Assembly (NCBI RefSeq): GCF_964204645.1
Contig: NC_134033.1
Location: 11,788,655 to 11,852,654, forward strand
Direction: 5' to 3'
Origin: Tubulanus polymorphus
Taxonomy: Eukaryota > Animalia > Nemertea
DNA length: 64,000 nt
The notes below the pieces were generated by a model, which saw nothing but the letters and a program-made list of their open reading frames with translations, was not told the DNA's origin and made no database searches. Positions 1-33,102 of the stretch are shown one piece after another; the first letter of the stretch is position 1; every line of letters begins with the position of its first letter. The position numbers and the translations under genes were made by a program.

Positions 1-3000
1 GTTGTTGTTGCAGGCTGCTTCGTTGTTTCAGTGGTCGGTGCTGGGCCTGCCGACGTTGTAACTGGTGGACTAGTCGTTGTCTCTTCGGGACTTGGAGGTG
101 ACGTTTTTGGTGTGGATTTCGTTGTCATTTGTCCACAAGTATTCGTCGCACTATCCCACGTCGCTTTCCCGTCGCATTTACACATTTTTGTCGTTTGGTC
201 AAACGTAGATCCAGAGACACATGATGTGCACTTGTTCGTCTTTTTATCGACGAACTTAGGTGCTTTACAAACGCAATTATTACTGACGAGTGTAAAGCCA
301 TTTTTGCAATCGCATTTATCCCCATTTTCAGTCGATGCTGAAGGACAAACACATTTACCACTTTTGTCTCGGAACTTGTCACCTTTACAAGAATTCGGTT
401 TACACGTTTTAGAGGCTTCGTCATATTGCTGTCCATTGGGACACGTTTCACATTTTCCATCCTTAACGTATTTCGGAGGATCACATTTGCAAACTTTATC
501 AACGGCGTTCATTTGGAAACCATTTTCGCACTTACAATCCTTCGATGGTTCATCGTATTTAGAATTTTGTGGACATTCGCACTTGTTATTTTTCTCTACC
601 ATTACACCCGAACATTCGCATTTCTGATTTTGTGAGTTATAAACCATCTTCGAGTCTTTACATTCACATTTACCATTTCGTTCAACCATACCCTTTTTAC
701 ACTTTGCAGTCGTTGTTGTTGCAGGCTGCTTCGTTGTTTCAGTGGTCGGTGCTGGGCCTGCCGACGTTGTAACTGGTGGACTAGTCGTTGTCTTTTCGGG
801 ACTTGGAGGTGACGTTTTTGGTGTGGATTTCGTTGTCATTTGTCCACAAGTATTCGTCGCACTATCCCACGTCGCTTTGCCGTCGCATTTACACATTTTT
901 GTCGTTTGGTCAAACGTAGATCCAGAGACACATGATGTGCACTTGTTCGTCTTTTTATCGACGAACTTAGGTGCTTTACAAACGCAATTTTTACTGACGA
1001 GTGTAAAGCCATTTTTGCAATCGCATTTATCCCCATTTTCAGTCGATGCTGAAGGACAAACACATTTACCACTTTTGTCTCGGAACTTGTCACCTTTACA
1101 AGAATTCGGTTTACACGTTTTAGAGGCTTCGTCATATTGCTGTCCATTGGGACACGTTTCACATTTTCCATCCTTAACGTATTTCGGAGGATCACATTTG
1201 CAAACTTTATCAACGGCGTTCATTTGGAAACCATTTTCGCACTTACAATCCTTCGATGGTTCATCGTATTTAGAATTTTGTGGACATTCGCACTTGTTAT
1301 TTTTCTCTACCATTACACCCGAACATTCGCATTTCTGATTTTGTGAGTTATAAACCATATTAGAGTCTTTACATTCACATTTACCATTTCGTTCAACCAT
1401 ACCCTTTTTACACTTTGCAGTCGTTGTTGTTGCAGGCTGCTTCGTTGTTTCAGTGGTCGGTGCTGGGCCTGCTGACGTTGTAACTGGTGGACTAGTCGTT
1501 GTCTTTTCGGGACTTGGAGGTGACGTTTTTGGTGTGGATTTCGTTGTCATTTGTCCACAAGTATTCGTCGCACTATCCCACGTCGCTTTCCCGTCGCATT
1601 TACACATTTTTGTCGTTTGGTCAAACGTAGATCCAGAGACACATGATGTGCACTTGTTCGTCTTTTTATCGACGAACTTAGGTGCTTTACAAACGCAATT
1701 TTTACTGACGAGTGTAAAGCCATTTTTGCAATCGCATTTATCCCCATTTTCAGTCGATGCTGAAGGACAAACACATTTACCACTTTTGTCTCGGAACTTG
1801 TCACCTTTACAAGAATTCGGTTTACACGTTTTAGAGGCTTCGTCATATTGCTGTCCATTGGGACACGTTTCACATTTTCCATCCTTAACGTATTTCGGAG
1901 GATCACATTTGCAAACTTTATCAACGGCGTTCATTTGGAAACCATTTTCGCACTTACAATACTTCGATGGTTCATCGTATTTAGAATTTTGTGGACATTC
2001 GCACTTGTTATTTTTCTCTACCATTACACCCGAACATTCGCATTTCTGATTTTGTGAGTTATAAACCATCTTCGAGTCTTTACATTCACATTTACCATTT
2101 CGTTCAACCATACCCTTTTTACACTTTGCAGTCGTTGTTGTTGCAGGCTGCTTCGTTGTTTCAGTGGTCGGTGCTGGGCCTGCCGACGTTGTAACTGGTG
2201 GACTAGTCGTTGTCTTTTCGGGACTTGGAGGTGACGTTTTTGGTGTGGATTTCGTTGTCATTTGTCCACAAGTATTCGTCGCACTATCCCACGTCGCTTT
2301 CCCGTCGCATTTACACATTTTTGTCGTTTGGTCAAACGTAGATCCAGAGACACATGATGTGCACTTGTTCGTCTTTTTATCGACGAACTTAGGTGCTTTA
2401 CAAACGCAATTTTTACTGACGAGTGTAAAGCCATTTTTGCAATCGCATTTATCCCCATTTTCAGTCGATGCTGAAGGACAAACACATTTACCGCTTTTGT
2501 CTCGGAACTTGTCACCTTTACAAGAATTCGGTTTACACGTTTTAGAGGCTTCGTCATATTGCTGTCCATTGGGACACGTTTCACATTTTCCATCCTTAAC
2601 GTATTTCGGAGGATCACATTTGCAAACTTTATCAACGGCGTTCATTTGGAAACCATTTTCGCACTTACAATCCTTCGATGGTTCATCGTATTTAGAATTT
2701 TGTGGACATTCGCACTTGTTATTTTTCTCTAACATTACACCCGAACATTCGCATTTCTGATTTTGTGAGTTATAAACCATCTTCGAGTCTTTACATTCAC
2801 ATTTACCATTTCGTTCAACCATACCCTTTTTACACTTTGCAGTCGTTGTTGTTGCAGGCTGCTTCGTTGTTTCAGTGGTCGGTGCTGGGCCTGCCGACGT
2901 TGTAACTGGTGGACTAGTCGTTGTCTTTTCGGGACTTGGAGGTGACGTTTTTGGTGTGGATTTCGTTGTCATTTGTCCACAAGTATTCGTCGCACTATCC

Positions 3001-6000
3001 CACGTCGCTTTCCCGTCGCATTTACACATTTTTGTCGTTTGGTCAAACGTAGATCCAGAGACACATGATGTGCACTTGTTCGTCTTTTTATCGACGAACT
3101 TAGGTGCTTTACAAACGCAATTTTTACTGACGAGTGTAAAGCCATTTTTGCAATCGCATTTATCCCCATTTTCAGTCGATGCTGAAGGACAAACACATTT
3201 ACCACTTTTGTCTCGGAACTTGTCACCTTTACAAGAATTCGGTTTACACGTTTTAGAGGCTTCGTCATATTGCTGTCCATTGGGACACGTTTCACATTTT
3301 CCATCCTTAACGTATTTCGGAGGATCACATTTGCAAACTTTATCAACGGCGTTCATTTGGAAACCATTTTCGCACTTACAATCCTTCGATGGTTCATCGT
3401 ATTTAGAATTTTGTGGACATTCGCACTTGTTATTTTTCTCTACCATTACACCCGAACATTCGCATTTCTGATTTTGTGAGTTATAAACCATATTCGAGTC
3501 TTTACATTCACATTTACCATTTCGTTCAACCATACCCTTTTTACACTTTGCAGTCGTTGTTGTTGCAGGCTGCTTCGTTGTTTCAGTGGTCGGTGCTGGG
3601 CCTGCCGACGTTGTAACTGGTGGACTAGTCGTTGTCTTTTCGGGACTTGGAGGTGACGTTTTTGGTGTGGATTTCGTTGTCATTTGTCCACAAGTATTCG
3701 TCGCACTATCCCACGTCGCTTTCCCGTCGCATTTACACATTTTTGTCGTTTGGTCAAACGTAGATCCAGAGACACATGATGTGCACTTGTTCGTCTTTTT
3801 ATCGACGAACTTAGGTGCTTTACAAACGCAATTTTTACTGACGAGTGTAAAGCCATTTTTGCAATCGCATTTATCCCCATTTTCAGTCGATGCTGAAGGA
3901 CAAACACATTTACCACTTTTGTCTCGGAACTTGTCACCTTTACAAGAATTCGGTTTACACGTTTTAGAGGCTTCGTCATATTGCTGTCCATTGGGACACG
4001 TTTCACATTTTCCATCCTTAACGTATTTCGGAGGATCACATTTGCAAACTTTATCAACGGCGTTCATTTGGAAACCATTTTCGCACTTACAATCCTTCGA
4101 TGGTTCATCGTAATTAGAATTTTGTGGACATTCGCACTTGTTATTTTTCTCTACCATTACACCCGAACATTCGCATTTCTGATTTTGTGAGTTATAAACC
4201 ATCTTCGAGTCTTTACATTCACATTTACCATTTCGTTCAACCATACCCTTTTTACACTTTGCAGTCGTTGTTGTTGCAGGCTGCTTCGTTGTTTCAGTGG
4301 TCGGTGCTGGGCCTGCCGACGTTGCAACTGGTGGACTAGTCGTTGTCTTTTCGGGACTTGGAGGTGACGTTTTTGGTGTGGATTTCGTTGTCATTTGTCC
4401 ACAAGTATTCGTCGCACTATCCCACGTCGCTTTCCCGTCGCATTTACACATTTTTGTCGTTTGGTCAAACGTAGATCCAGAGACACATGATGTGCACTTG
4501 TTCGTCTTTTTATCGACGAACTTAGGTGCTTTACAAACGCAATTTTTACTGACGAGTGTAAAGCCATTTTTGCAATCGCATTTATCCCCATTTTCAGTCG
4601 ATGCTGAAGGACAAACACATTTACCACTTTTGTCTCGGAACTTGTCACCTTTACAAGAATTCGGTTTACACGTTTTAGAGGCTTCGTCATATTGCTGTCC
4701 ATTGGGACACGTTTCACATTTTCCATCCTTAACGTATTTCGGAGGATCACATTTGCAAACTTTATCAACGGCGTTCATTTGGAAACCATTTTCGCACTTA
4801 CAATCCTTCGATGGTTCATCGTATTTAGAATTTTGTGGACATTCGCACTTGTTATTTTTCTCTACCATTACACCCGAACATTCGCATTTCTGATTTTGTG
4901 AGTTATAAACCATCTTCGAGTCTTTACATTCACATTTACCATTTCGCTCAACCATCCCCTTTTTACACTTTGCAGTCGATGTTGTTGCAGGCTGCTTCGT
5001 TGTTTCAGTGGTCGGTGCTGGGGTTGCCGACGTTGTTACTGGTGGAACTTTGGTTCGTCCCGGCGTTGTTTTCGATGATTTTGGTACACATTTCTCAGTT
5101 GGGGTGTCATAGATTTCTCCTGGTTTACAAGTAACTTTGCTACGTCCCGGTGTTGTTGTCGACGATTTTGGTACACATTTCTCAGTTGGGGTGTCATAGA
5201 TTTCTCCTGGTTTACAAGTAACTTTGGTTCGTCCCGGCGTTGTTTTCGACGATTTTGGTACACATTTTTCAGTAGGGGTGTCATAGATTTCTCCTGGTTT
5301 ACATGTAACTTTTTTGCGTCCTGGCGTTGTTTTCGATGATTTTGGTACACATTTCTCAGTTGGGGTGTTATAGATATCTCCTGGTTTACAAGTAACCTTT
5401 TTGCGCCCCGGCGTTGTTTTCGATGATTTTGGTACACATTTTTCAGTAGGGGTGTCGTAAATCTCTCCAGGTTTACAAGTAACTTTGGTTCGTCCAGGCG
5501 TTGTTTTCGACGATTTTGGTACACATTTCTCAGTTGGGGTATCATAGATTTCTCCTGGTTTACAAGTAACTTTGGTTCGTCCCAGTGTTGTTTTCGACGA
5601 TTTTGGAACACATTTCTCGGTGGGGGTGTCGTACATTTCTCCTGGTTTACAAGTAACTTTAGTTCGTCCGGGTGTTGTTCTCGATGATTTTGGTACACAT
5701 TTTTCAGTAGGGGTGTCATAGATTTCTCCTGGTTTACAAGTAGCTTTGCTACGTCCCGGTGTTGTTGTCGACGATTTCGGTACACACTTCTCAGTTGGGG
5801 TGTCATAGATTTCTCCTGGTTTACAAGTAACTTTTTTGCGTCCCGGCGTGGTTTTCGATGATTTTGGTACACATTTCTCAGTTGGGGTATCAAAGATTTC
5901 TCCTGGTTTACAAGTAACTTTGGTTCGTCCGGGTGTTGTTTTCGATGATTTTGGTACACATTTCTCAGTTGGGGTGTCGTAAATCTCTCCAGGTTTACAA

Positions 6001-9000
6001 GTAACTTTGGTTCGTCCCGGTGTTGTTTTCGATGATTTTGGTACACATTTCTCAGTTGGGGTGTCATAGATTTCTCCTGGTTTACAAGTAACTTTGCTAC
6101 GTCCCGGTGTTGTTTGCGACGATTTTGGTACACATTTCTCAGTTGGGGTGTCGTAAATCTCTCCAGGTTTACAAGTAACTTTGGTTCGTCCCGGTGTTGT
6201 TTTCGATGATTTTGGTACACATTTCTCAGTTGGGGTGTCATAGATTTCTCCTGGTTTACAAGTAACTTTGCTACGTCCCGGTGTTGTTTTCGACGATTTT
6301 GGTACACATTTCTCAGTTGGGGTGTCATAGATTTCTCCTGGTTTACAAGTAACTTTGGTTCGTCCCGGTGTTGTTTTCGATGATTTTGGTACACATTTCT
6401 CAGTTGGGGTGTCGTAGATTTCTCCAGGTTTACAAGTAACTTTGGTTCGTCCCGGTGTGGTTTTCGATGATTTTGGTACACATTTCTCAGTTGGGGTGTC
6501 ATAGATTTCTCCTGGTTTACAAGTAACTTTGGTTCGTCCCGGTGTTGTTTTCGATGATTTTGGTACACATTTCTCAGTTGGGGAGTCATAGATTTCTCCT
6601 GGTTTGCAAGTAACTTTGGTTCGTCTCGGTGTTGTTTTCGATGATTTTGGTACACATTTCTCAGTTGGGGTGTCATATATTTCTCCTGGTTTACAAGTAA
6701 CTTTGCTACGTCCCGGTGTTGTTTTCGACGATTTTGGTACACATTTCTCAGTTGGGGTGTCATAGATTTCTCCTGGTTTACAAGTAATTTTGGTTCGTCC
6801 CGGTGTTGTTTTCGATGATTTTGGTACACATTTCTCAGTTGGGGTGTTGTAGATTTCTCCAGGTTTACAAGTAACTTTGGTTCGTCCCGGTGTGGTTTTC
6901 GATGATTTTGGTACACATTTCTCAGTTGGGGAGTTATAGATTTCTCCTGGTTTACAAGTAACTTTGGTTCGTCCCGGTGTTGTTTTCGATGATTTTGGTA
7001 CACATTTCTCAGTTGGGGAGTCATAGATTTCTCCTGGTTTGCAAGTAACTTTGGTTCGTCCCGGTGTTGTTTTCGATGATTTTGGTACACATTTCTCAGT
7101 TGGGGTGTCATATATTTCTCCTGGTTTACAAGTAACTTTGCTACGTCCCGGTGTTGTTTTCGACGATTTTGGTACACATTTCTCAGTTGGGGTGTCATAG
7201 ATTTCTCCTGGTTTACAAGTAACTTTGGTTCGTCCCGGTGTTGTATTCGATGATTTTGGTACACATTTCTCAGTTGGGGTGTCATAGATTTCTCCTGGTT
7301 TACAAGTAACTTTGGTTCGTCCCGGTGTTGTATTCGATGATTTTGGTACACATTTCTCAGTTGGGGTGTCATAGATTTCTCCTGGTTTACAAGTAACTTT
7401 GGTTCGTCCCGGTGTTGTTTTCGATGATTTTGGTACACATTTCTCAGTTGGGGTGTCGTAGATTTCTCCTGGTTTACAAGTAACTTTGGTTCGTCCCGGT
7501 GTTGTTTTCGATGATTTTGGTACACATTTCTCAGTTGGGGTGTCGTAGATTTCTCCAGGTTTACAAGTAACTTTGGTTCGTCCCGGTGTTGTTGTCAATG
7601 ATTTTGGTACACATTTCTCAGTTGGGGTGTCATAGATTTCTCCTGATTTGCAAGTAACTTTGGTTCGTCCCGGTGTTGTTTTCGATGATTTTGGTACACA
7701 TTTCTCAGTTGGGGAGTCATAGATTTCTCCTGGTTTGCAAGTAACTTTGGTTCGTCCCGGTGTTGTTTTCGATGATTTTGGTACACATTTCTCAGTTGGG
7801 GTGTCATAGATTTCTCCTGGTTTACAAGTAACTTTGCTACGTCCCGGTGTTGTTTTCGACGATTTTGGTACACATTTCTCAGTTGGGGTGTCATAGATTT
7901 CTCCTGGTTTACAAGTAACTTTGGTTCGTCCCGGTGTTGTTTTCGATGATTTTGGTACACATTTCTCAGTTGGGGTGTCATAGATTTCTCCTGGTTTACA
8001 AGTAACTTTGGTTCGTCCCGGTGTTGTATTCGATGATTTTGGTACACATTTCTCAGTTGGGGTGTCATAGATTTCTCCTGGTTTACAAGTAACTTTGGTT
8101 CGTCCCGGTGTTGTTTTCGATGATTTTGGTACACATTTCTCAGTTGGGGTGTCATAGATTTCTCCTGGTTTACAAGTAACTTTGGTTCGTCCCGGTGTTG
8201 TTTTCGATGATTTTGGTACACATTTCTCAGTTGGGGTGTCGTAGATTTCTCCAGGTTTACAAGTAACTTTGGTTCGTCCCGGTGTTGTTGTCGATGATTT
8301 TGGTACACATTTCTCAGTTGGGGTGTCGTAGATTTCTCCAGGTTTACAAGTAACTTTGGTTCGTCCCGGTGTTGTTGGCATAACTCTGATTGGTGTTGTA
8401 CCTCCTTTTGGTGTTGTGACGCTTCCTTTTGGTGTTGAACCTCCTTTTGGTGTTGTTACGCTTCCTTTTGGTGTTGTGCCTCGTTTTGGTGTTGTTACGC
8501 TTCCCTTCGGTGTTGTGCCTACTTTTGGTGTTGTGCCTCCTTTCGGTGTGGTACCTCCTTTTGGTGATGTAACACTTCCTTTTGGTGTTGTACCTCCTTT
8601 TGGTGTTGTAATGCTTGCTTTTGGTGTTGTAATACTTCCTTTTGGTGTTGTAACGCTTCCTTTTGGTGTTGTACCTCCTTTTGGTGTTGTAATGCTTCCT
8701 TTTGGTGTCGTGCCTCCTTTTGGTGTTGTGCCTCCTTTAGGTGTTGTGGTGTTTCCTTTGAGAGTTGTGCCTCCTTTTGGTGTTGTGACGCTTCCTTTTG
8801 GTGTTGTGCCTCCTTTTGGTGTTGTGACGCTTCCTTTTGGTGTTGTGCCTCCTTTAGGTGTTGTGGTGTTTCCTTTGAGAGTTGTGCCTCCTTTTGGTGT
8901 TGTGACGCTTCCTTTTGGTGTTGTGCCTCCTTTTGGTGTTGTACCTCCTTGTGGTGTTGTGACGCTTCCTTTTGGTGTTGTGCCTCCTTTTGGTGTTGTG

Positions 9001-10171
9001 ACCTTTCCTTTTGGTGTTGTGCCTCCTTTTGGTGTTGTGGTGTTTCCTTTTGGTGTTGTGACGCTTCCTTTTGGTGTTGTGCCTCCTTTTGGTGTTGTGG
9101 TGTTTCCTTTGTGAGTTGTGCCTCCTTTTGGTGTTGTGACGCTTCCTTTTGGTGTTGTACCTCCTTTTGGTGTTGTAACGCTTCCTTTTGGTGTTGTGCC
9201 TCCTTTTGGTGTTGTGGTGTTTCCTTTGGGTGTTGTGCCTCCTTTAAGTGTTGTGCCTCCTTTTGGTGTTGTGGTGTTTCCTTTTGGTGTTGTGACGCTT
9301 CCTTTTGGTGTTGTGCCTCCTTTTGGTGTTGTGGTGTTTCCTTTGTGAGTAGTGCCTCCTTTTGGTGTTGTGACGCTTGCTTTTGGTGTTGTACCTCCTT
9401 TTGGTGTTGTAACGCTTCCTTTTGGTGTTGTGCCTCCTTTTGGTGTTGTGGTGTTTCCTTTGGGTGTTGTGCCTCCTTTTGGTGTTGTGCCTCCTTTTGG
9501 TGTTGTGGTGTTTCCTTTGGGTGTTGTGCCTCCTTTTGGTGTTGTGCCTCCTTTTGGTGTTGTGGTGTTTCCTTTTGGTGTTGTGACGCTTCCTTTTGGT
9601 GTTGTGCCTCCTCTTGGTGTTGTGGTGTTTCCTTTGGGAGTTGTGCCTCCTTTTGGTGTTGTGACGCTTCCTTTTGGTGTTGTGCCTCCTTTTGGTGTAG
9701 TAGTGTTTCCTTTGGGTGTCGTAGCATTTCCTTTCGGTGTTGTTGTTACTCCTTTAGGTGTTGTAGTATTTCCATTGGGTGTTGTGCCTCCTTTTGGTGT
9801 TGTAGTATTTCCTGTTGGTGTCGTTGTTCCAACGCACTTTTTCTTATCCGGTGATTCCATTGTACCATTTGGACAGGTGCATATGTTTTTTTTTTGGTCC
9901 CAGGATTTTCCACCGTCGCATTTTTTCTCGCATGATTTTGATTGATTGTTTTCCGTGTAACCTTCTTTACACACACATTTGCTATTTTTCACGACTCGAT
10001 TTTCGGATTCTTTGCATGTAGCGTTTGGTTGCTTGCACTCGCCATTGACTCGACTTTCACCTTCTTTGCAAACCGGTTTGCATGTTCCATTTACTTTCTC
10101 AGTCCCATTGGTGCATACCGATTGACAGGTGCCATTTCTAAGTACTTTACCATCGGTACAATTAACCTGCC
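1..10171 (-). CDS. Single giant coding exon (>=10,171 nt, ~3,390 aa) of the mucin-like gene
   Basis: Acceptor cttctag|GG CAG GTT AAT TGT at 10171. Codons start at positions 2 mod 3 both at 10169 and at position 11 (...TKQPATT). The repeat units I translated have no stop. The ORF track lists no terminated ORF in this frame despite internal Met codons. Confidence 0.88.
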
Positions 10172-13100
10172 CTAGAAGTTTATCCAGATGTGACATTTTA
10201 GACAAGCGAAACCTGTAGTAATGATTATCGATGTTAAATCAGGGGGCTGTTTCACATCTCTTGGTGTAATATAACTCGTTATACATATTAAGGGTTGATC
10301 ACTTGAAAATGAACTAATTCCAACACACTTGTCGGATCTCGCAACACTGTGGAAATTGGTCAGACCCTGTTTATTGAATGATTGTAGGGATGGAATGGCA
10401 TAATCAAATAACTAGAAGGTCCGATGGATATATATCATACCATAGCTCAATTTGTACACGACATATCAAAACTGCTCACTATCGATTTCGCGGGAATTTC
10501 GAAACTCATCATAAGATAGGTTAGTAAAGTTACTGAAAATTGCTTTAAAAATAGCCTACCTCCACAATTCCCGGTGGCCTCGTTAAATTTCTGATCTGAC
10601 TTTTCACAAGCGGCTGAAGTTATAAAGGGGCTTTTAAAAACATGTTTGACTGTTACGAAGTGTTTTTGAGTATTTCGATTTCTCAGTATGCTAAGTTCTT
10701 ACCAAGACAGTGGTCCCCAACTTTGATTAAGGGCGGTGGACACTTATCTGAAATTAAAGCATTGACAAGCATTGTTTATGTCACTATTACTCATCAGGAC
10801 TGAACTTAAGATGGCGATGCTGATATATGATGTCAGTGACAGAAAATATTTGAAATTCAAACGACTCACCCATTTGGCATTCACCATTTGTTGGCTTAGA
10901 ACCGACGGGACACGTTGGATTAGGAGGTGGATAGGCTGAAATTACGTGACACTGGATCGTTAAAGGACCTTCTTATTTAGAAAGCATTTATGGCAGTGAA
11001 ATCCAAACTAGGGACCAAAATGAGAATAGAGGAAAAGATTTATTTCTGAAACTCACTGATGCATTTTTTTGTGGTAATGTCCCATTTCTCTCCAGACAAA
11101 CATGGTGGGCAAGTCAGCACTGTAACAATTCAAGCATGGAATTGCTAGCAACGCATAAGTATTGTATGAAAAATGTAGATGTTCAACCGCGTGTGTAGTT
11201 ACCAATTGTAAATACTTACGGATACAAAGATTGCACTCTTTCGACCATCCCTCCGGGCACTTGTCAGCTACGGATGACAAACATTGTATGAAAAGAGGTA
11301 CGAAAATATCAATAGGTATGTACAGTAAAATGAGGGCTCGTCAGTCAAGATGGCCATGGCGTGCATCAGGTTTCCTCTCATACTCATTTAAAGTCTATTC
11401 ATTTTTCCCTCAAATCTAATGGACCCCAAATGAAATTGTATCATATGTGAACCAAACAGGATTGACATGAGTTGTATCCAGGAAGAAAGCCACTAAATAT
11501 TTGGATGGATATATGAAAGCTGTGGGTACTGGAGTGTGTAATGGGTAGTGTAGTGTGATCTGTGTGCATTTTGGTGGCCAGCACACAGATCACATCGTTC
11601 ATTGGGGTTTAGTCCAGGACTCGCGAGATTTTCAACAACACGGAAGTAACGTGTAATAAATGATGACTTGAATTGCATGACTACCTACCACCCCTCATTA
11701 TTGTTGGAAAACTAAACGTTCCGCACTGACTAAAAATTAGTAATAATAATCAATAACATTTTAGAAATGGCCAGAATTTTAACTTAGGTTCTATCTCATT
11801 TTTATTTTACAATTGCGATTGCTATAATTTTTTTTAAACGGCCGTTAAGGCTTCATGTTTCGTCTGCAATTCACTGCAAATAGTTACGCAACTACGCACA
11901 TTTCAGTGTTTTTGGCAGCTGTACACTCAATCGGCACCGTTCGTGACTAGCTTCACTGCGGAATTATCATTAATTAACATCGCCATATCACATCATCAAC
12001 TTATATTGTGCCTTAAAACCCTAACAGCCGAAATAATTGAAATACACACACGATTTCTATCATTGAAAATTGAGAGAATGGCCGTGTTTGTGTTCTGCTG
12101 CTTCGCGTAAATCCCGCAGGGTGGCGCCACCGCGCGGAGTGGGGCCGATACGTCTACGACACATGATTTGTTTATTTGTTTATGTAGAAGGAGCTTAAAA
12201 AAACTTGTTGAAAGTTTATTGAAATATAACTCGATTTTGATCGAGGTGTACTGGTGGGATACTACTGAGGGCTACAATAGCTGGAAATATTTCGAATATT
12301 AAGTCGGCTACTCACCCTTGCACGAGGAACCAGACTTTTTAAAGCCAACGGGACAGGTATGGACTGCAAAAAGAGAACAGATGAAATATACGAAACGAAT
12401 ACGTAGAAAACGTAAATCTATTTACATATTTAACATGTTTTTGACTGACCGATGTTAACTTACACATGTAAAGCTGTCGCTTTTCGTTACAGACCTTGGT
12501 GAAACCCTTCGACATTGTGTAATCTACATTGAGTAAATGGAAAATGTTAGGGTTTTCAGCAGAGATAACTTAATTAACGCATATTGTTTTGGAATGAAGT
12601 TGATCCACTACTGAATATTTCGTTTTTTTTGTCGTTATCTACCTGACACCGTTCGAATGAGAAAGTATTTCACGTAGTTAAGGACGTCGGGTTTTTCGGG
12701 AGTGTACCAATATCCGGAGTAGGTCAACTGCCAAAGAAACGTTACATCAGCCGAAGCCGCTACTCCTAGTGCGAACAAGGCCACTCCTTTATCCATGAGC
12801 TTTTGCGCCTCTAGATATTAGTTACAAATGAAAAAGAGGAAAAATTCAGTACCATTTAATTCTAGGAGTTGTATGGACAATGAGTTGTGGGAGGAAAGAA
12901 AATCTCTGCTTTAGTGGTGTTATTCTGTAACTGAGGATAAACAGTGTTCGATATTTTCGATATTTTCCAAATCAATGTAATCAGTTACATACCTGCCACG
13001 CTATTTTGTGTATTCTGCGACTTGCCGCAACTCAGCATCATAATGAAACGGTCGTTCTTGTTCCCGGTGAACACTGTATTAGTTCGCACCAAAGCCTGCG

Positions 13101-16100
13101 TGATGTCCGGGCTACCGTCAGACGATTTGATGCCTTTTATGATTTTAAGGAATTCGTCGATTTTGTCGAAGACTTTCAGATCTTTTGCGATTACTGTTTC
13201 TTTACCGTAGGTGATGATACCGACCTGATTAGGAAATGAAATTTTGTGAGTTGTTATAATGTAATTTTAAAGATTAATCATGATCTAAAAACAGGTAACT
13301 CGGCAACTCGACATGAGCAACAACGATAGCGATCACGATAAACCTAGAACCCAGTGCCACAGACAGGTATATCCTAGAGGGGACCAAAATCATGTTTATA
13401 AGTTTTTAGATTGGCCACTGCATCACATGGATCGGTTTTAAATTGAAACCTCGACTGTGTAGCTAACCACTGATGTATCGACAAGTAAGTTCATTTTTAC
13501 CTTGACTTTTCCAGTTGGTAATGCGGAAATAAAGAGCTTCGTGAACGTCTTGTATATCTCCAACTCGGACTGCCCGAGGCAGCTTGATGTGTCGAGCAAA
13601 AACATGATCTCACCGGTTAAAGACGCTGTCGAAATGAAGATGAAAAAGAATGCCGAATAATTAATGGTGCGCTATAGTTTCTCTAACTTATGACATAGCT
13701 ATACAGCGTTCCGAAACATTGGAATATGTGACGAAAATACTTCATGACTAGCGCAAGAGTGTAATATGAATCGGTATACTGTCGCCTTGAATACGTACAT
13801 TTGCCAGTTATCGGTGATGCGACGCACGCCCCTGCCGAACCGGTAAATCCGCACGGACATTGGCCATTAGCTGAAACGATTGGAAAAATCATTCGATAAT
13901 ACATTGTGCCAGAAGGATTCCATTCCTGCGTGGCCCACGTCTTATAGTGGTCATGGTATTATTGTGTACAAGAAGCTACTAAAGTTGAGTATGTTTAAAA
14001 TGTGCCAATGTATTTTTAGTAATAGTCCATTCAATTTAAATCAACGATTCAAACATTATATTTCGTGATTCAATATTATGTAAAAGAAGAACTGCTTTTT
14101 TGCCACTTTTTGAAGGCACAGTTTTGCTCTTTGAACAATATCGAAGAACTCGTAGAAATAAAACCCAAACTCACGGTAGCAAAGGCCATCGGATCCTTTT
14201 TTAGTTCCGGTTGGACATTTTATATCGGCTGTAAACGAACGAGTTATTTAAACATCATTTATAATATGTACAGAAATCTACACCACTAGTGACTATCACA
14301 AATCTCAATTAATTACTATACAATATATATTACAAGGTTACGGGTAGTGTAAATAAGTAATTTTTCAGAACAGATCCCACTAATTTAAAAACTGAGCTTG
14401 TGTTTTTCGAATGGTTAATGTAACTGTTTTAGTTCTTTTTTACTTACGACTTCCACAGGTTCCGTTTGGCCCGGTTTTATTACAAGCTGAAATAAGAATG
14501 AATGCAATGAATTACATAAACAATCGAGTTGGAGTTAACTCTTAAGTTATAATCTATTCATTTTCATTGCATTTTTAGTACTTACGCTTGCATTTTTGAT
14601 CGATTGCTATTTTGCCAGGAGGACATTCTACAATCGAAAATATAAAGTGTACATAATGATATACGACAACATTTCCGACATTGAAAAATCAATACTAATA
14701 TATATTTGATATTGATATTGAATTTATATCAGTTTACTTACTGTCGAATTCACATTTTCCTGTTGCGTTATTTTGTTTGTAGCCCTCCTCACACTTCGGC
14801 TTTTCTAGAAATAAAATCACAAAGTTCTTCATATAACATCGTTTGTTTTCCAGCCTGCTACGTCGAGGTAGATTATGCTATCTTCATATACAAACCACAT
14901 TTGTCTTTCTTTATGCAGGAGTCGTTGCTGAGAACGTATCCCTTCTTACAGAAACATCCTTCAACCGATGGTTTGTCGCAATTAGTGGTGCCCCCTGGTG
15001 ATTCACAGGTTTCCGGGCAACCGGTACCATTTGAGTAATACTCAGTATTCGGTTTACTACAATTCATCGCTTAAAAAATAACGGTTATTTGAAATTACAT
15101 TAGACGAAGACTAGCCTGGATATTTGAGATACGATGTAAGAAAATGAGCATGGTTCATTCTGTTCATATCCATGGCTCGAAATACATAGACTGTCCACCC
15201 GAGAAATATCGGGCCGTGTAATAAACCCATGACGGAAGTGCGGCTAGGGTTTGTGTTGGCGTGAACTTCTGCAGGAAGCAACCAAACCCTGGCAAGCGAG
15301 GATGATATGTACAGTGACTTGTCTATGAAGACGAGGTACAGGTTAAATCACGGATAACTTACGACAAAAGTCAGTTTTTCGCCAAGGTTCCTTCGGCGCT
15401 TTACTCTTCTCCTCGCAATATTTGAAAAAGTCGGCTATCATATTACAATGTGAATTGGTGGTGTTGCCGGCACATCCGTCTACCACGCAGTTAGACAGAT
15501 ATTCGTCGGCTTTCTTCTGATCGACGCCGATGCAGTCTTTGAAAATACCACCTTTGTCCGTTATGAGGCCGCAGAATTGTTTCGACTTCAATTTGGTTTC
15601 CTTCGCCGGGTCACATTTCGGTGTTGTTGTCTTGTTTGTGCACTGTCTGTTATTCCAAATTTTAAAAAAAGACAATAGATCATAAATACAGCGTGTTGAG
15701 AGAGATCCACGTCATACGAACTGCTATCATTACTCAATATATCTCATAAATGTCGCAAAAATTCATGTTGATATATTTGGTGGAATTTGGATAATCTTTT
15801 TCGTTTTATCATCGATTTCGATAGCGAAACAGAAACACATATATAGTCATCACTTAATACTGCTTTGTTTTTCTTTTCGGTTCGAGACCACATATAATGT
15901 CCCGGACGAATTTTGGTCGTCCATTCTGCATCGTACGTATTGTAGTGTTCTATTTTTGATGTTCGTAATAAAATTTCGATGGTTGAAAAACACGCCGGAC
16001 ACAAAGCGCCGAATGTTCACCAAATAAGGTTTTTCAGCAAATTGACAAAGCTGGACGAAGATTGAAAGATAGTTTTTACTGACCCCGATGAAGCCGGTGC

Positions 16101-19100
16101 CCCGGAATCGTCCGGAACCAACCACTCTTCGAAGAATTTGTCAACGTCAGTCTCGACGTTTGTTTTCACTTGTACGCCATCTTTGTGATAATAACCGTGT
16201 TTACCACAGTCACCGCAAACTCCTACAGATGTATTGAATATATCATGAATTCTAGATCAGTTACAATATTTCATTAAAACGATACTAAGATATTGAGTGA
16301 GAATAATATCAATGACCCGGTCGCTATAAGGACAATCTATGTGTTTCTACATATTGCTCATACAGAAGCCGGACGTATGTCCGCGTATATAAGTTGTCCT
16401 AAAGAAAAACTCAAAACATGCGGACCCAGTGGGTACCCAAAAACATGGCGCCTGAAAACTGTATAAAGGCTTATTCATTTCCCTTGGCCGTTTCCAGGCG
16501 TGAAAGCTTTTCGCCGCGTTAACTTACCGTTAGTTTTTGTTTTCCACGTTCCCGAATCGGTGAAAACGAAACCCATTGAAATTCCGTCGAACTGTAAGCT
16601 GACTCCGCACGAGCTCATCGCGTCAACGTTTATGAATTCACCGACTTTAGATATGAATACATCAGGACTGAAGCTGTAATCCGGCACCTTAACGGCTTTA
16701 CCATCGACCTTTTTAAATGGGCAAAACAGAAAGAATTCAGTGATTAATCGGTGGAAAATGTATTCGGAACGGATTATCAAATTATATCGTTAGAGTTGAA
16801 TGGAAACTACATAGCTGAGGTGATATTTCAGTTCTTAAGTACCGGAGTTATTCTGCAAGTGTATGAACATACGAACCTCAACAGTTCCGCCTTGCTTCAG
16901 ACGAATCTTGAAGTTTTTTATCTTGAAATCGAACATCCTAACCCAGGATACGTCTTTAGCGTTGTTTCTATGTTCGGTTTTAACTTCTATCGTAAATTTG
17001 CAGTCTTGTGTCTGATCGACGGACGCGGAGAATACGTATTTACAAACTCCCTGAAATTCGAGCACGTCGCCGCGGAAGTTGAAAAAATGCGGGTCTCCGG
17101 ATGTTCGGCATTTACAATAGCCTTAAAAGAAAGAAATACCGAGATGTACGTAGGTTTCGGATTGGGAATAAATCAGAAACGATAAATGAGTTGCTGCAAC
17201 TTTGGAAGTTGAGCGCCAACGTGAAAAATTCGATATGCCATCAAAACAAGTATGAATTCATAATGGCCTAAAGAAAGCATGAGTCGTAGTAAGCACAGCT
17301 GACGTTACACCTGACGAGTATCTCTAGTGTGAGATCGAAACGTCTTGTCTTTTTTATTAACTTTTGATAAAATAGATGCTCGATTTTAAAAAACTGTGCT
17401 TAATGGGTTTCTATCTTTTTATCTGTTCTTCACGTTTGAGTGCACGGGTATTCTACTAGGCGTGGGTCTGGATGCACGATCTCAGATGCAAAAGCTTAAA
17501 TGTCTAAACTTTTTGAATCAATTTTCGAATATGAATCACCAAACTTCAGAAAAGCTCAAATGAAAGCCATTTGGATCTCAGTCCTCGTGGACTTTATGAG
17601 GTCCATGGGTTCATCGGGGTCGAGGTCGTAGTAGATGCGTCAGGTGAGTTTCGATCAAAAAGAATTTGTGTCAGACACATATTTAGCTTGGGAACATCGC
17701 GGGATCGATGAGTTCTTAGATCGAGAATTATCGATCGTAAACGTACTTGCTGTGCTGTTACACTCGGCCCACGAATGAGTCCAGCCTGTCTTGCGCGTAA
17801 ATTTTCGGCCCGTTTCTCGATTTGCCGTCGACAAATGACAGATTTTGCTACCCGAATCGTAGTTGATCGCCTCGCACCTGATCTCCGTGTTCGTCAGACA
17901 TTGGATCATACAAGACGCGGCCGTATTCACGTTTGAGATGGATTTATCGCTGGATTTGGAATTTTCCCAACCGACCATGTCTTTCATAATCAATGTGTCA
18001 CCTATAACGAAGAAAAGAAACTGAACACGTTTATTCAATTTTAGTCCATGAACCGGCTGCACTGCTGGAGGGTTTCACTATACGTAATAAACTTATTTTG
18101 AACTATTCAGAGTGAAATTCAACTCACAGCAGTGGAACTGGGTTTCGGATTAAATGAATCGGAATATAGGACCAGATAATTGAATAAGGGAATGAAAGCC
18201 GAGATATCTGGTATTCTCCCATAATTAAACTTCACATTACTTGGTGCCTTTGTGTTTTTAGGGATTGCGTGGATTCAAGTATACGTCACGTGTCACCCAT
18301 ACAAAAATGAATTCGAATGTCGAATGGTTAAAAACAATGATCTTACAGTAACAGCCTTTCCCGATTCCAATCTGTCCGCTCGAGCATTTTGCGCGACCTG
18401 AAATAAGTGAATTAAACTTATTCAAAGGCGGCAGCAACAATTCATGGTGATGTCTCGAACTCTACGTAGCTAGTTGAAATTGAGATGCTGCGGATCCTTC
18501 AATGCGTCCTGGAGCCAGTTTCACAGAATTTTCTTATATACTCTGAATAGATTTCAACTGAGCGAGTTAAGAAAATAAATGGAACCGAGTCGAATATTGT
18601 TCGTAAAACTGGCTTTCTGACGTAGATCGAGAAAGTATTTCGAAAGAAATAGGAAAATACGTCGCCGTGGAGTTAGTTATACGTAGAATAAAGCTCCGTG
18701 TCTGCCTCCCTATTAAGAGTCTGACATTCAAAATAACTACAAAGTTTGTTATTGTTTGAACGCGTAATACATGTACGTAATGATTCTGGCCATAATGATC
18801 TAGCGTACATATGTAAGCTTATATCGGGGATTTTGGTCCAACTGCAGGTCGCCTTTCCGCAATGTGGAACTAGTGTAATTAAACAATAGGGTTATGGTTA
18901 AGTTAGATTAGGTACGTAACCATTAAGCACGACACACACGATTTATATTCATATGTCCCTACTTCGTGAGCGTTTGGGCTCCAAAGACTAAAACTGCAGT
19001 TGCTCATCAACAAAACTCCGTCTTGCAAGATTACGAATTTAACAATCATTTTCGCCTCTTACCTTTTCCGATTATAGTTGTAATAGAGGTGAGTACGTTC

Positions 19101-22100
19101 TGGTAGTCGCTTCCGGTAACCTTGAAGGTCATGCCAGCGTCGGTTATTTCGGCGAGTGTACCGGCACTGGAGGTCATGGCCACCGTTATCACCGTCGTGC
19201 CTTTCGTCCACAGTTTCATCGCTGAAGTTAACATTCGATCGCTGGATGCCGTTTTACCGGCGCCGATTACGATTACCATTCGAGCCGTGTCGATACCGCG
19301 AGCGCCATTACCTGCAGAGATCAATATACCATTCTTAGAATATACGATCAATGAAACTTGGATGTCATTCTGTTTATACTTTATGATTATAGATTGATTA
19401 AATTCATCAAACAAGACACACGGTTATCATAACGTCGAGTAAATTTTGAAGAACGTTATTGCGTTGCGCATTGGCATCATTTAGTTATGGATGGTAGTTT
19501 GAATATCGATAGCATCTGTGGATGTTATTCTGAGAGTTATGAAATCTATCTTAGTCAAATTTGCACAGAATTCATCAGTGTAGTTGTAACTTCATAATTT
19601 TGCATATCTTACCGTTGAAATATGTCGATACTAGCCAATCAAAAGCCGAATACAGATTTGAAGCTGTACTCTTCTGTTGCATCTCTTTTATTTTACCTTT
19701 CACGCATGCGTTGTCGGTACACGCGCTCAGGAAGGCACGATTATCCACTTTATCGGAATAACCGACTACACCTGAAAAACAAATACATGTGTTGACATAA
19801 TTTGACTGAAACTAATGGTATACCCTTTTTCGGGGTACTTTTTCTTTTAGATTGATCTTTTGTAGCTTGTGCCTGAAAGTTGCATAAAGTGAATTAAAAA
19901 TTTTTGAATCTCCATACTCCTTGGTGTCTGTCCTCTACGTCACTCGCTCTGCGTCGATACTTATCGTTTGTTTGTGCCCCTAATGAACCGCTAAATCGAC
20001 AATACATACTTACCGACCTGGATACCGGTTTTCGAGATTTTGAAAAGTTCCGTCAACGATTCGGCAAAAGCTTGAGCTTTGGTGAATTCGGCACTTGTCA
20101 GTTCCTTGGATTGATCGATCATCACGGCAATATCCCAATTTCCTGACGTTTGAGTTGGGCCGACTAGAAATATGAATATTTGGAGAAAAGGCCTGAGTCG
20201 TTGCGAACATAATTAAGCGTGACTTCTCCTAGGACATCAGGGATTCGACTATCTAACTAGGCCTTAAAGTCGGATAAAGACGGATAGACTTGGGTGGAAA
20301 GAGCAGATTTTTGGCGGCCTCTCCTGTGAGATATTTTAGATATTCGAATTTGAATGCATTTCAAGAGCATCAGGAGCAGTTTCTAGGTAATGAACGGTAA
20401 TCGATGGCCCACATAACTTTTTGATAAGTGAACGTTTCAGCCCCACTGGTGATCAAAATCAAAATCAAACGATTGAATTGATCAAATTCGTTTTCGACAT
20501 TTTTCGTACCTACGCATCCTTTTCCGACCGTATACTGCTTACCGCCCGTGCATTGACACTGGAAATTACCGTCCGTATTTTTACACGTTGCCGTGCCGCA
20601 CGGGTTGCCCTCCAAACACTCGTTTATATCTAAATATAGGAGAAAATCGTGGAATTAGAATCGCAGGAATAATGAATTTAAATGGTTTTATCACCTGGGG
20701 CCAGTTGCACAGGCATAGCCTGCATTTAGAACCAGGGGCAGTTGCTCAAAAGTTGGTGAGTTAACATAGTGACAATTGAAAGTTCATTGTTACTATCGTT
20801 GGGGTATTTATCCGGCGGTTATCTTTATCCAACTTTGGAACGAGTGGCTGGTGTTTTATGGTTTGATTTTATCTAGACTTACAGAAGGAAACAATGGTTA
20901 ATGAAATAGCGAATGGGAATATAGTTAAGATATCAAAATTGAGTTGATTAGTCCATGGATCTAAAACCAACGAAAAAGATCGAAAATTCGGATTTCTAGA
21001 AATAGGTTTTAGCAATAGGGCCTACGATATTCTAAATTTTTCGGCTCGTTATTGTGGGACTACGGTGGTTTATTTCAGGTGGAAAATAATCAAACTGAAG
21101 ATGATACATCAGACAAATCTATACGCTTATAAAAGTATGTACCTGAACATTGTCCACCTTTTGATTGGTAACCCGCTTTACACGCAGTATCTAAATTAAA
21201 GAAACATAATTCGAATATATAATTTGATGTGGCATGATCAAATGAATACTTTTTAATTACTCAAACGGTTTTCATCGTACTGATGAAGTTCGATTATCTT
21301 CTTATTGTCAAGCTAGGACAATTCGGAAAAGATCGTGTAGAATCAGTCAGTCCCGAAATTGCACCGTATGCCAGACCGGTCTTATAATATATCTATTTCG
21401 CCATATATGTATGCAGTATAAATGATATACAAATGATGATAAGTTACATACGTACACCGATGGATGCTTGGAAAGCCAATAAAAGCTTTGCCCCGTACAA
21501 AATCCAAGCACCCTTCGCTATCGGTTGCAGTCAAAATATCAACATAGTGAGTTTGACTACTTTTTACTTCGAGTCGATGAAAAAAACAAGTGTCAATAAT
21601 TTGATTATAATGTGATATTAACTGAAATGTTTTCGGTACCTGCAGCCGCTTGAGCGGCGACGAATACGCCTACGCTATGGAAATCACTGATGACCTTGAC
21701 ATTGATGATCGACGTCACTTGTTTGGACAACATCGCCCGGAAATCTCCATCCGGGCCGTTAGTCATAACGATACGTACCAATATCTGTGAAGGGGAAACG
21801 ATTTTCGATGAGAGAACTTTTCTATCATGTGCCTTATTTCATTTTGGCAATGCGGATTACTATTGAATACCGTTATAGACTTTGACACGGTGTCATGAAC
21901 CGTATTGTTTTTATTGAGCTCATTTATTGAGCTGATTTCATTCGCATTAGAAACGTACCCCCTTCGATATCAATTCCACCAAAGTCTGTCCAACTTTATT
22001 CTTATCCTCCGATTTCGGGCCGGATATAAGAATCAACTGTTTCATCGACTGTTTCGAGCTGATTGTTGATTCGTTGAACATCTGAATGGCTTTCTTCAGA

Positions 22101-24005
22101 CCGTCGTTGGCCGCCTCACCCGATGACGATCTGGTGACGCTTTTGACTTTTCCCTGAGCGCAAGCTGCATCTTTACAATTCGTCCATCCACCACTGACGC
22201 TTCCTTGGGCATAGCTTATGACACCTGCGCGTAAGCATAGCCAAAATTATCAAAAATATATCACGAGTTACTAAATAACGGATTCCGTCCCAGTTTGAAA
22301 TAGTCTTTGGTTAGGTTTTGTCTCGTAAGCTACTTAAGGTTAACCAGTAACCAATAGATAAATGACATTGTGGCAATTCCATATTGTGAACATGGTAATT
22401 ATATGGATCAGTTCCACAGTAAGCTTGCAGTTAGGTCTGAGTTATTTTTTTCAAAATACTCAACCCTAGAGTCATATTCCAACCCAGAACTGTGGAATTT
22501 GGGTGATGTCGGTATAGTGAAACCAGTGAGATACTAACTCTTTGTTCAGTGAGTTCATGGATTAAATTAAGCCAACGTCGTGTTTTGAGGTTGATCGGAG
22601 GATCTTGCTGGTATACCTATAACCAGCATGGTTGATGAAGTTCTGACGAATAAGTCCATCAAAAATTGATGTTGTCTACCAGAAATATTAATCTAGAACG
22701 GTTTACTCAAATTTTACATGTTCAGTTTACCTAAGTTAAGTTTAGCACCGTCAGGTTTCATGGAAGAGACGATATCTTCCGTGATCGATTTCATCTTATC
22801 GAACTCGTCGGTCGTTCCGAGGCCGGTAGATTTATCAATAGCGACAATGACGTCCGTATTCTTCGATGGAGCTTTCGAATAGAAAGAAAATCGTATCTCA
22901 TCGCTCGAATAAAATTTTACTTTTTAATTTGGCGAAATGAGAATTAAACGAGAAGGTCATCGGTCCAACTATATATTTGTTGATTTCCAGTTGGGGAAGG
23001 TGGGGATATATTTAATTGAGTTATCGATTCTACAAACTGAAATTGTCTGAAACACAAGGCAAGGAATATACAGTGAGGGGTATTATCATTTCTATTTTCA
23101 GGATCTAAATCATGATTCTCTTTGCAAAAATGTCACTATATTAATGTAAGGCAATCGGTATAATGTGTTCAACTAACCGGCGACTGTAGGCGCAGTCAAT
23201 CCAACCAGTTTCCCAGCTTCGACTTTCACGCAATCACCGTTAATGTATCCTGCAATACAATCCATTATTATCATAATCATCATGTTTAAGTATTTTAGTT
23301 ATCTATCGTACAAGGTCGTTTACTCGTTGGCGTATTTCGACGAAACTGGCCCATGAGTCGATCAGATTATTAGCGAAGATCAAACAGCGCTGTGGAGCAA
23401 TGTGGCCGAGTGGGTAGAGCGTTCGACTCTGGGAAGCCAAGTCCAATATTCGAACCCCGTACATTACCGTAGTGGCCTCGGGCAAGACACTTATCCTCAT
23501 TGCCTCTCTCTACCCAGAGGTAAATGTATATCATTATCAAATGTTAATCTTTATTATCATTTGTACGGTCTCTTTAGCAGTTATTCATTATCATTTTCCA
23601 ATTACCGCATGAGCTATCACTGCCGCCTCCTTTAACAGTTGTTGATGCAGCAGCAGCAGCAGCTTTAGTAGTTGTTGCAGCAGCTCCAGCTCCACCTGAT
23701 GCTTTAGTTGTCGGCCCGGCTCCACCTGATGCTTTAGTTGTCGGCCCCGCTCCACCTGATGCTTTCGTTGTCGGCCCGGCTCCACCTGATGCTTTCGTTG
23801 TCGGACCGGCCCCACCTGATTTTTTCGTTGTCGGTCCGGCTCCACCTGATGCTTTAGTTGTCGGCCCGGCTCCACCTGATGCTTTAGTTGTCGGCCCGGC
23901 TCCACCACCGCCGCCGTTTCCCATCATCCCGCTACCATCGACTGTCTTTAGCTGCCAGACAACCACGACAACGATGACCCCAACCAGGATCCATCGGATC
24001 CGCAT
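1..24005 (-). CDS. Giant secreted mucin/adhesive-like protein (SP, 3x VWA, EGF-Ca, PAN, VWD-C8-TIL, Cys-hairpin and Thr/Lys/Pro repeats); 3' end outside window
   Basis: Hand-spliced exons with consistent phases: 24005-23606, 23249-23178, 22871-22731, 22224-21959, 21784-21640, 21190-21143, 20629-20510, 20163-20014, 19771-19613, 19311-19063, 18397-18347, 18001-17762, 17121-16877, 16708-16528, 16222-16084, 15646-15363, 15069-14896, 14804-14742, 14627-14586, 14486-14448, 14228-14175, 13870-13799, 13625-13501, 13224-12993, 12810-12643, 12523-12464, 12363-12316, 11267-11220, 11119-11057, 10935-10870, 10613-10560, 10171-<1. The first 31 exons sum to 4198 nt (phase 1), matching the last acceptor. Hydrophobic N-terminus MRIRWILVGVIVVVVVWQ. 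Motifs: DINEC..C..TDGNFQCQC (EGF-Ca), CRTSGDPH and GVCGDC (VWD), CPETC/CFCKKGY (TIL). Confidence 0.88.
2..4985 (-). repeat. Coding tandem repeat, 711 bp (237 aa) x 7, continuing beyond the window
   Basis: Near-identical units with period 711. Each has a 26-Cys block (CKKGMVERNGKCECKDSK...CDGKATWDSATNTC) plus a PTS linker (TTKSTPKTSPPSPEKTTTSPPVTTSAGPAPTTETTKQPATTTT). Confidence 0.97.
5048..8374 (-). repeat. Coding tandem repeat, 87 bp (29 aa TKVTCKPGEIYDTPTEKCVPKSSKTTPGR) x ~38
   Basis: Period 87 read directly; translated in the giant-exon frame. Confidence 0.96.
8390..9830 (-). repeat. Coding short repeats, 18/21 bp (PKGGTT, PKGSVTT, PKGNTTT)
   Basis: tttggtgttgtgcctcc-type units; about 480 aa of P/K/G/T, mucin-like, with many NTT sequons. 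Confidence 0.95.
12643..13625 (-). other. Third VWA domain (3 exons)
   Basis: EIMFLLDTSSC...KVKVGIITYG...RFIMMLSCGKS...LMDKGVALFALGV. Confidence 0.8.
14896..17121 (-). other. VWD-C8-TIL assembly (5 exons), GDPH at 17087-17098
   Basis: CKCRTSGDPHFFNF, FQGVCKY, GVCGDC; C8 segment FCGLI..IFKDC..CVVDGC..WRKTDFC; TIL Cys pattern. Confidence 0.88.
17307..17348 (+). ncRNA. Minimal type I hammerhead ribozyme motif (Penelope-type), copy 1
   Basis: acac CTGACGA gtatctc tagtgt gagatc GAAACGTC ttgt: core CUGANGA and GAAA, helix II, palindromic ACGU, GUC triplet; helix I has one mismatch. Confidence 0.55.
17762..18001 (-). other. PAN/apple domain exon
   Basis: SCMIQCL...CEAINYDSGSKICHLS pattern. Confidence 0.8.
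19063..22871 (-). other. VWA1 (22871-21640), EGF-Ca (20629-20510), VWA2 (20163-19063)
   Basis: DVIVAIDKST...LGVISYA; DINECLEGNPC; DIAVMIDQSKE...VGVVGYSD...ARMVIVIGAGK. Confidence 0.8.
23395..23527 (+). mobile_element. tRNA-derived SINE remnant (CORE-like body)
   Basis: A-box-like TGGCCGAGTGG, B-box-like ATTCGAACCC, then GTGGCCTCGGGCAAGACACTT resembling the CORE-SINE motif. Confidence 0.65.
23688..23907 (-). repeat. Coding 30-bp repeat (GGAGPTTKAS) x ~7 after the signal peptide
   Basis: Seen directly in ORF 23574..24005. Confidence 0.95.

Positions 24006-27544: not shown

Positions 27545-33102
<5,558 letters not shown>

Follow-up and report, generated by a model that had tools for sequence, protein, structure and literature searches.

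A predicted giant secreted repeat protein with VWD- and VWA-bearing ends in the ribbon worm Tubulanus polymorphus

The stretch analysed here, called the window, is 64,000 nucleotides (nt) of the genome of the ribbon worm Tubulanus polymorphus (assembly GCF_964204645.1, contig NC_134033.1, positions 11,788,655 to 11,852,654). Its left part carries a giant repeat-bearing exon on the minus strand, which runs off the window, so 60 kb of left flank were added to the reading. Negative window coordinates lie left of the window, and L006 is one of the flank pieces. The giant exon and the smaller exons on its two sides probably form one gene of about 58 kb (minus strand, window 24005 to about -33831). 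It would encode a cationic glycoprotein that is secreted, has no membrane anchor and comprises about 13,500 residues, with predicted codons divided among an N-terminal region, the head (about 1,270), the giant exon (10,848) and a C-terminal region, the tail (about 1,400-1,500). An earlier reading, made by a model from the letters of the window (the sequence-only reading), had proposed a hidden secreted protein of at least 4,800 residues. The hidden giant protein was borne out; its length had been put about three times too low. Every homology search and fold comparison was run exon by exon, on exon-sized pieces, and genome-wide searches covered the 268-Mb, 77-contig assembly.

A six-frame scan of the window found a stop-free minus-strand stretch from 10238 to 3, which is 3,412 codons long and runs off the window. 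With the left flank included, the frame stays open from window 10238 to -22386, a total of 10,875 codons in which the assembly has no N, and the genome search independently returned the identical open frame. Within it, the giant exon comprises 32,544 nt, or 10,848 codons, and is phase 1 at both ends. The first base after its acceptor is 10171 and its donor is at L006:7628. The product of this exon has a mass of 1.16 MDa and consists of 10% cysteine, 13.5% threonine and 14.8% lysine, with a net charge of +647. The real frame is missing from the program-made list of open reading frames (ORFs) because it runs off the window. In its place, the list holds 198-aa plus-strand and 125-aa minus-strand ORFs that repeat every 711 nt. 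The sequence-only reading had taken these for off-frame ghosts of a hidden exon and had described that exon as a block copolymer rich in lysine, threonine and cysteine, and both statements agree with the frame, composition and repeat blocks found. It had also named in-frame stops as an observation that would count against such an exon, and the exon as assembled has none. Its estimate of more than 10 kb and three blocks was right about the blocks and too small otherwise, since the exon spans about 32.5 kb and a fourth repeat type, of 274 residues in six copies, lies left of the window.

The exon begins with about 120 residues of EGF-like cysteine hairpins (9804..10171, minus strand; acceptor cttctag/GG, phase 1), for which EB and FXa_inhibition gave only sub-threshold matches. 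This start is followed by a basic proline-threonine-serine (PTS) block of 472 residues (8388..9803, minus strand), built from TTPKG-type units of 5-7 residues. Tandem Repeats Finder reported periods of 39 and 60 nt in the block, and no Pfam family was found. Threonine makes up 33.5% of it, glycine 22%, lysine 14.8% and proline 14.4%; it contains 0 acidic residues and has a computed isoelectric point of 12. Next come 38 copies of a 29-residue (87-nt) unit (5046..8387, minus strand; 38.3 copies with 93% matches in Tandem Repeats Finder), each made of one two-cysteine hairpin (CKPGEIYDTPTEKC) and a Thr/Pro/Lys linker. The remainder of the exon in the window, 1..5045 on the minus strand, holds the first 7.1 copies of a 237-residue (711-nt) unit, and the array continues left of the window towards the exon end at L006:7628. 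This unit consists of a 192-residue core with 13 hairpins and 26 cysteines, plus a 45-residue PTS linker. The larger modules number 37 copies in total: 29 near-identical 237-residue copies and another at 75%, plus six variants of 274 residues and a single divergent copy. The 274-residue variant, found left of the window, adds two single hairpins to a core of the 192-residue type. The divergent copy, at 39-41% identity, sits within about 340 unique residues near the end of the exon. The peptide CKPGEIYDTPTEK, which had been suggested for proteomic detection, is present in the giant exon. Throughout, the exon can be read as one cysteine hairpin and one Thr/Pro/Lys linker combined in four ratios: linker alone, or 1, 13 or 15 hairpins per 29, 237 or 274 residues, respectively.

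The repeats carry the marks of a coding sequence. All 26 of the 26 core cysteines are invariant across the repeat types, in copies down to 39-41% identity. The ratio of nonsynonymous to synonymous substitution rates (dN/dS) between repeat types is 0.13-0.38, with dS reaching about 1.4, and the near-identical 711-nt units differ from one another at 0-10 nt. The 32.6-kb open frame, the invariant cysteines and the low dN/dS together rule out chance.

The core is a series of 13 consecutive C-x(10-13)-C units separated by 1-4 residues. An AlphaFold2 model, built from an alignment of five versions of the repeat, predicts a rod of hairpins with 24 short strands and a mean predicted local distance difference test (pLDDT) score of 82. 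Pfam searches at E<=10 gave no family for two versions of the core and a sub-threshold cEGF match only for a third. Among 1.84 billion representative proteins, no match to the core profile exceeded 71 bits. Its top matches were protist-style CxC repeat proteins, EGF proteins and DUF5874, the best at 71 bits, and these were judged generic rather than homologous. Searches with the fold were similarly negative: Foldseek against the PDB gave nothing at E<=0.001 (all E>0.02), the wide VIA-align search reached a best Z of 2.2, and the ESM Atlas searched by shape gave TM scores of at most 0.34. When the ESM Atlas was searched by features, the core scored 0.92 to an unnamed DUF5874/CBM_14 cluster, with low recognition. 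All weak structural neighbours were EGF, furin-like or TNFR-type cysteine repeats. The only conclusion from these fold comparisons is that the core would belong to the generic EGF, furin-like or TNFR-like class of cysteine hairpins, and nothing more specific.

Three Pfam candidates for the 29-residue array were rejected. CBM_14 (peritrophin-A) reached 122 bits by summing partial matches at profile positions 27-49 of 53. No single stretch passes as a complete six-cysteine CBM_14 domain, and the 29-residue unit has two cysteines. The Ribosomal_S24e and TNFR_nem matches are likewise sums of tiny partial matches with no passing stretch and were classed as repeat artefacts. In the whole-genome search, the 29-residue and 237-residue-type families were found in this exon only. 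Hairpins of the same two-cysteine kind also occur in phase 1-1 micro-exons of head and tail, each of which encodes one. The proposal that the protein may be lineage-specific is supported by repeats private to the locus, with no close relative among the 1.84 billion representatives and no Pfam family at E<=10. No match in the protein collection was obtained for the giant exon's unique C-terminal 375 residues either, a result that is silent about expression.

Upstream of the giant exon, the head runs on the minus strand from an ATG at 24005 through a signal-peptide-like segment and about 23 small exons. The Pfam order across its stop-free pieces is VWA, EGF_CA, VWA, PAN_1, VWD, C8, TIL and VWA, the same order that the sequence-only reading had given. 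The signal peptide that it had proposed is also present: the ATG is the first Met after an in-frame stop and is followed by MRIR and 13 hydrophobic residues. Because the hydrophobic core is 13 residues long, the segment is taken as a signal peptide rather than a membrane span. Exon 1 (23606..24005; donor TGCG/GTAATT, phase 1) continues with seven copies of GGAGPTTKAS and an Ala-rich stretch. A further, non-coding exon upstream is suggested by an acceptor-like site that lies 5 nt ahead of the ATG.

The remaining head exons, all on the minus strand, were placed by Pfam matches, splice sites and phases. VWA domain 1 occupies three exons in 21640..22871 (about 22871-22731, 22224-21959 and 21784-21640), with the Pfam VWA match on the middle exon and an incomplete metal ion-dependent adhesion site (MIDAS) motif, DKSTG. 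A calcium-binding EGF exon follows at 20510..20629 (phase 1-1; EGF_CA E 2.9e-6), with its donor chosen to keep the sixth cysteine. VWA domain 2 spans three exons in 19063..20163, where all junctions are phase 1 and the first exon matches Pfam VWA with E 4.3e-5. The PAN/apple exon is at 17747..18001 (phase 1-1; PAN_1 E 3.4e-10). Three VWD exons lie in 16084..17121 (VWD E 1.3e-9), with a GDPH motif at 17087-17098, and are followed by a C8 exon at 15363..15646 (C8 E 1.3e-9), whose acceptor was set by hand in phase 2 and fits the donor at 16084. The TIL exon is at 14896..15069 (phase 1-1; TIL E 1.3e-10). Three phase 1-1 micro-exons of 63, 54 and 72 nt in 13799..14804 were recognised from their translation and splice sites; each encodes one cysteine-bounded hairpin that has no Pfam family. 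VWA domain 3 then takes up three exons in 12643..13625, two of which match Pfam VWA, with splice sites to set them. Two or three more two-cysteine micro-exons were identified from translations in 10560..11267; the first two have weak junction scores and the last is 10613-10560.

Among solved structures, the VWD and C8 exons are nearest to FCGBP, then to MUC5AC, MUC5B, MUC2 and VWF. The GDPH of the head VWD aligns in register with the GDPH of the FCGBP VWD domains, and autocleavage at GDPH has been described in such domains (PMC8267560, PMC10880436). The intron that follows the last head VWA exon, ahead of the next micro-exon, contains, at 11476-12155, an interspersed element of about 680 bp that has more than 40 genomic copies at 97-99% identity on many contigs. 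Its copy number and identity point to a very young mobile element, and clear terminal inverted repeats were not seen in it.

The sequence-only reading had envisaged a globular head followed by a repeat tail. This layout has to be revised, since a second, paralogous globular region follows the giant exon. In the 11 kb after the giant exon, on the same strand, Pfam matched EGF_CA, VWA, EGF_CA, VWA, PAN_1, VWD and VWA, and the full architecture of the tail, left of the window on the minus strand, is VWA-EGF-VWA-EGF-VWA-PAN-VWD-C8-VWA. The tail C8 exon was recognised solely through its similarity to the head C8 exon, and the tail VWD has no GDPH. Most of the exon chain is phase 1. The last exon is Ser-rich, then Lys-rich, has no cysteines and ends at a stop near window -33831. 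A tblastx comparison aligns the tail collinearly with the head at 21-40% identity (chain E 4.5e-25), the best genome-wide paralogue of the head PAN exon is the tail PAN exon (31% identity, E 3e-8), and the intron phases 0, 1, 2 through VWD into C8 are common to both. By these sequence comparisons, the tail is an ancient duplicate of the head region. A downstream transmembrane anchor had been named beforehand as evidence against a structural secretion, and none was found: the 14 kb after the giant exon contain no in-frame hydrophobic span of 19 residues. One strong hydrophobic window was rejected as a 25-codon off-frame reading of an AGC-rich stretch. No Pfam match to SEA, VWC, CTCK, CysD or MAM was obtained in the tail exons scanned, next to which small unscanned exons may exist.

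The join between the giant exon and the tail decides between one gene and two. Twelve nt before the stop of the long frame there is a donor, AAAG/GTATGT, followed by a 94-nt intron and the acceptor ttctag/TT, with phase 1 on both sides, and reading in frame past this intron enters the VWA beta-1 strand directly. If there were two genes, the first would stop at the TAA closing the long frame of 10,875 codons, with the tail as a separate tandem paralogue. A stop just past the proposed donor would fit that arrangement, as would a tail whose architecture copies that of the head, which is expected of a tandem duplicate, and the head-tail join is a prediction from the sequence. However, the donor and acceptor are both consensus sites with matching phases, and the gap between the stop and the open frame of the first tail exon is only 25 nt. 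That exon begins within a VWA domain, and the tail has no Met, signal peptide, promoter room or upstream polyadenylation signal of its own; the 94-nt intron contains no polyadenylation signal either. A product rich in cysteines and destined for the extracellular space would not fold if it lacked a signal peptide. Because of the matched-phase junction into a VWA strand and a tail that lacks its own start and promoter room, we read head, giant exon and tail as one gene and consider two genes unlikely. The array could also be a relic or an assembly artefact, open through recent amplification and unexpressed as protein, or inflated in copy number. The small distances between the 711-nt units agree with this, and units 12-19 of the array equal units 20-27 base for base, an exact 5.7-kb duplication (L004-L005, window about -1,400 to -12,800). 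This duplication is either a very recent amplification by unequal crossover or an effect of the assembly. The public collection of 1.84 billion representatives also holds no protein from this gene. Yet four repeat types and unique segments share one frame across 32.6 kb, every cysteine is kept in the diverged copies, dN/dS is low at a dS of up to about 1.4, and about 45 flanking exons on the two sides of the giant exon have intact domains and consistent phases. A relic or artefact is thus very unlikely. Several points nevertheless weigh against a single expressed gene for an adhesive or matrix protein. Besides the missing public protein, the exact eight-unit duplication means that the copy number of the repeat may be wrong. 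The signal peptide was called by eye. Exon ends were set by a simple splice-site score and hand inspection, and several are weak, the weakest being those of E2, E21/E22 and the tail parts between the C8 exon and the last VWA exon. Read from the translations, 0 of the 7 VWA domains in head and tail have a complete DxSxS MIDAS motif, which makes metal-dependent binding by them unlikely. Finally, O-glycosylation, the disulfide pattern, GDPH cleavage and polymerisation are steps that we infer.

The single gene could still be the orthologue of a described family, namely a gel-forming mucin of the MUC2/5AC/5B type, FCGBP, zonadhesin or a membrane mucin. A VWD-C8-TIL unit, of the type found in gel-forming mucins (MUC2/5AC/5B), VWF and FCGBP, is present, and FCGBP and MUC5AC/5B/2 are the top-scoring solved structures for the VWD and C8 exons. 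As in gel-forming mucins, a PTS domain lies between cysteine-rich globular ends, and the PTS sequence that characterises those mucins is represented by the 472-residue Thr/Pro block and by PTS linkers in every repeat. In contrast to theirs, the PTS sequence here is strongly basic, and most of the mass is a predicted rod of disulfide hairpins. Gel-forming mucins have the N-terminal order D1-D2-D'-D3, with three or four VWD assemblies, whereas here there is a single assembly per end, VWD-C8-TIL in the head and VWD-C8 in the tail, and VWC, CTCK and CysD were not found. FCGBP agrees in the type of VWD and in the head GDPH; it differs in that it strings together many VWD-C8-TIL units with GDPH and lacks both PTS sequence and repeat rods, whereas the present protein has two units only. 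The SEA domain and transmembrane segment of membrane-tethered mucins were not found, nor was MAM. VWA and PAN are foreign to mucins, FCGBP, zonadhesin and membrane mucins alike. Orthology to any of these families is highly improbable, and none is indicated by Pfam or solved structures on the exon-sized pieces that were compared. The earlier statement that the domain order matches no named family is supported.

As one gene, the locus would encode a protein of an already-known kind: giant, repetitive, VWD-bearing proteins that are secreted as adhesives or mucus. Among described systems, the nearest is Mlig-ap2, a surface-binding adhesive of the flatworm Macrostomum lignano, which was compared by its published description. 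Mlig-ap2 is 14,794 residues long, with VWD and TIL domains and, in its centre, 46 repeats of 255 and 221 residues. It carries O-glycans, adhesion depends on it, and it has in situ, proteomic and RNA interference support (PMC6410801). The Tubulanus protein resembles it in size (about 13,500 residues), in its VWD and TIL domains, in its repeats (37 of 237-274 residues versus 46 of about 220-255), in high cysteine content, in predicted O-glycan sites and in a lineage-specific sequence without database homologues. An N-terminal LDL-receptor domain and C-terminal thrombospondin (TSP1) repeats belong to Mlig-ap2 only, neither being found in the exons here. VWA, PAN, EGF_CA, the duplicated globular region, the basic PTS block and the 29-residue repeat block are present here and not in Mlig-ap2.

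Two further systems share fewer traits. In the summary of PMC6410801, the sea star footprint protein Sfp1 is large, secreted and cohesive, has VWD, C8 and calcium-binding EGF domains and contains about 5% cysteine. The Tubulanus protein is like Sfp1 in these three domains and in being cysteine-rich. The same summary gives Sfp1 galactose-binding lectin domains, of which none was found here, and does not mention a giant repeat array. The Balbiani-ring giant secretory proteins (sp-I) of Chironomus form tube silk at about 1 MDa (PMC2113727). The Tubulanus protein shares with them its approximately megadalton size, and they too are used outside the body. Its VWD, VWA and PAN ends set it apart from the Balbiani-ring proteins, and there is no sequence relation. 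A link to the CxC repeats of Chironomus BR3 had been suggested and was dropped, since there is no Pfam CXCXC (PF03128) match even at E<=10. Balbiani-ring proteins are likewise encoded by very long repeat exons, in units that pair a cysteine-containing part with a charged Pro-rich part.

From this analysis, a scaffold of mucus, tube or glue is a plausible candidate function. The signal peptide would take the protein into the endoplasmic reticulum, where the hairpin cores could fold as disulfide-stapled rods and the Thr-rich linkers could acquire O-glycans. The VWD-C8-TIL, VWA and PAN modules at both ends may link molecules end to end and to other matrix proteins, a step modelled on the D assemblies of mucins, VWF and FCGBP. 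The large positive charge, +647 for the giant exon alone, would bind anionic glycans and surfaces. The product would then be a cohesive, adhesive polymer on the micrometre scale that serves in epidermal mucus, the lining of the tube or glue. Since the giant exon and almost all its neighbours are phase 1-1, skipping of the giant exon would join head and tail in frame and give a protein of about 2,700 residues. A more far-reaching proposal, which we offer tentatively as a possibility, is that this is the first molecular scaffold for the mucus, tube or glue of ribbon worms. The protein would then act as a bipolar polymerising fibre that resembles Mlig-ap2 by convergence, with a megadalton rod that arose by amplification of hairpins within one exon and with a giant exon that can be skipped in frame to leave a short head-to-tail cross-linker.

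In the literature searched, we found no description of a structural protein of ribbon-worm mucus or tubes, and the work on ribbon-worm mucus was about toxins. If expressed, the protein would rank with the longest secreted proteins that have been predicted for any animal. After Mlig-ap2, it would also be a second, independent case of a protein of glue or mucus that reaches about 14,000 residues and has VWD ends and repeats of about 240 residues. To our knowledge, a 32.5-kb exon is longer than the longest human exons. The building rule of one hairpin and one linker in varied ratios may be relevant to bio-inspired wet adhesives, and the gene is an example of one missed or truncated by standard ORF tracks and probably by gene predictors too.

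Several other features lie around the gene. On its upstream side lies a neighbour gene at window 27545-31150 (minus strand), in which Pfam detects a TSP_1 domain (E 7e-10; match at window 27548-28129) and two further exons look MAM-like by eye only. This neighbour is separate from the giant gene, since the latter has its own start and signal peptide. Between the two genes, a short tandem repeat of 39-nt units (window 26224-26640) is open on both strands and is probably a non-coding satellite. Farther along the window, the plus strand carries a CD225/interferon-induced transmembrane-type ORF at 36301-36798 (E 4.6e-18) and a retrotransposon gag ORF at 39636-40256.

The downstream neighbours (L008-L009, minus strand; window about -36,100 to -39,000, -43,000 to -47,000 and -55,000 to -59,000) were identified from translations alone. 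They include a gene for a CUB and trypsin-like protease, which has a Thr/Pro-rich linker and a signal peptide of its own, and two near-identical tandem genes with VWD(GDPH)-C8-TIL-EGF exons. A partial second copy of the protease lies between the two tandem genes, and one of these contains a long TA-type microsatellite that reads in frame as (YI)n.

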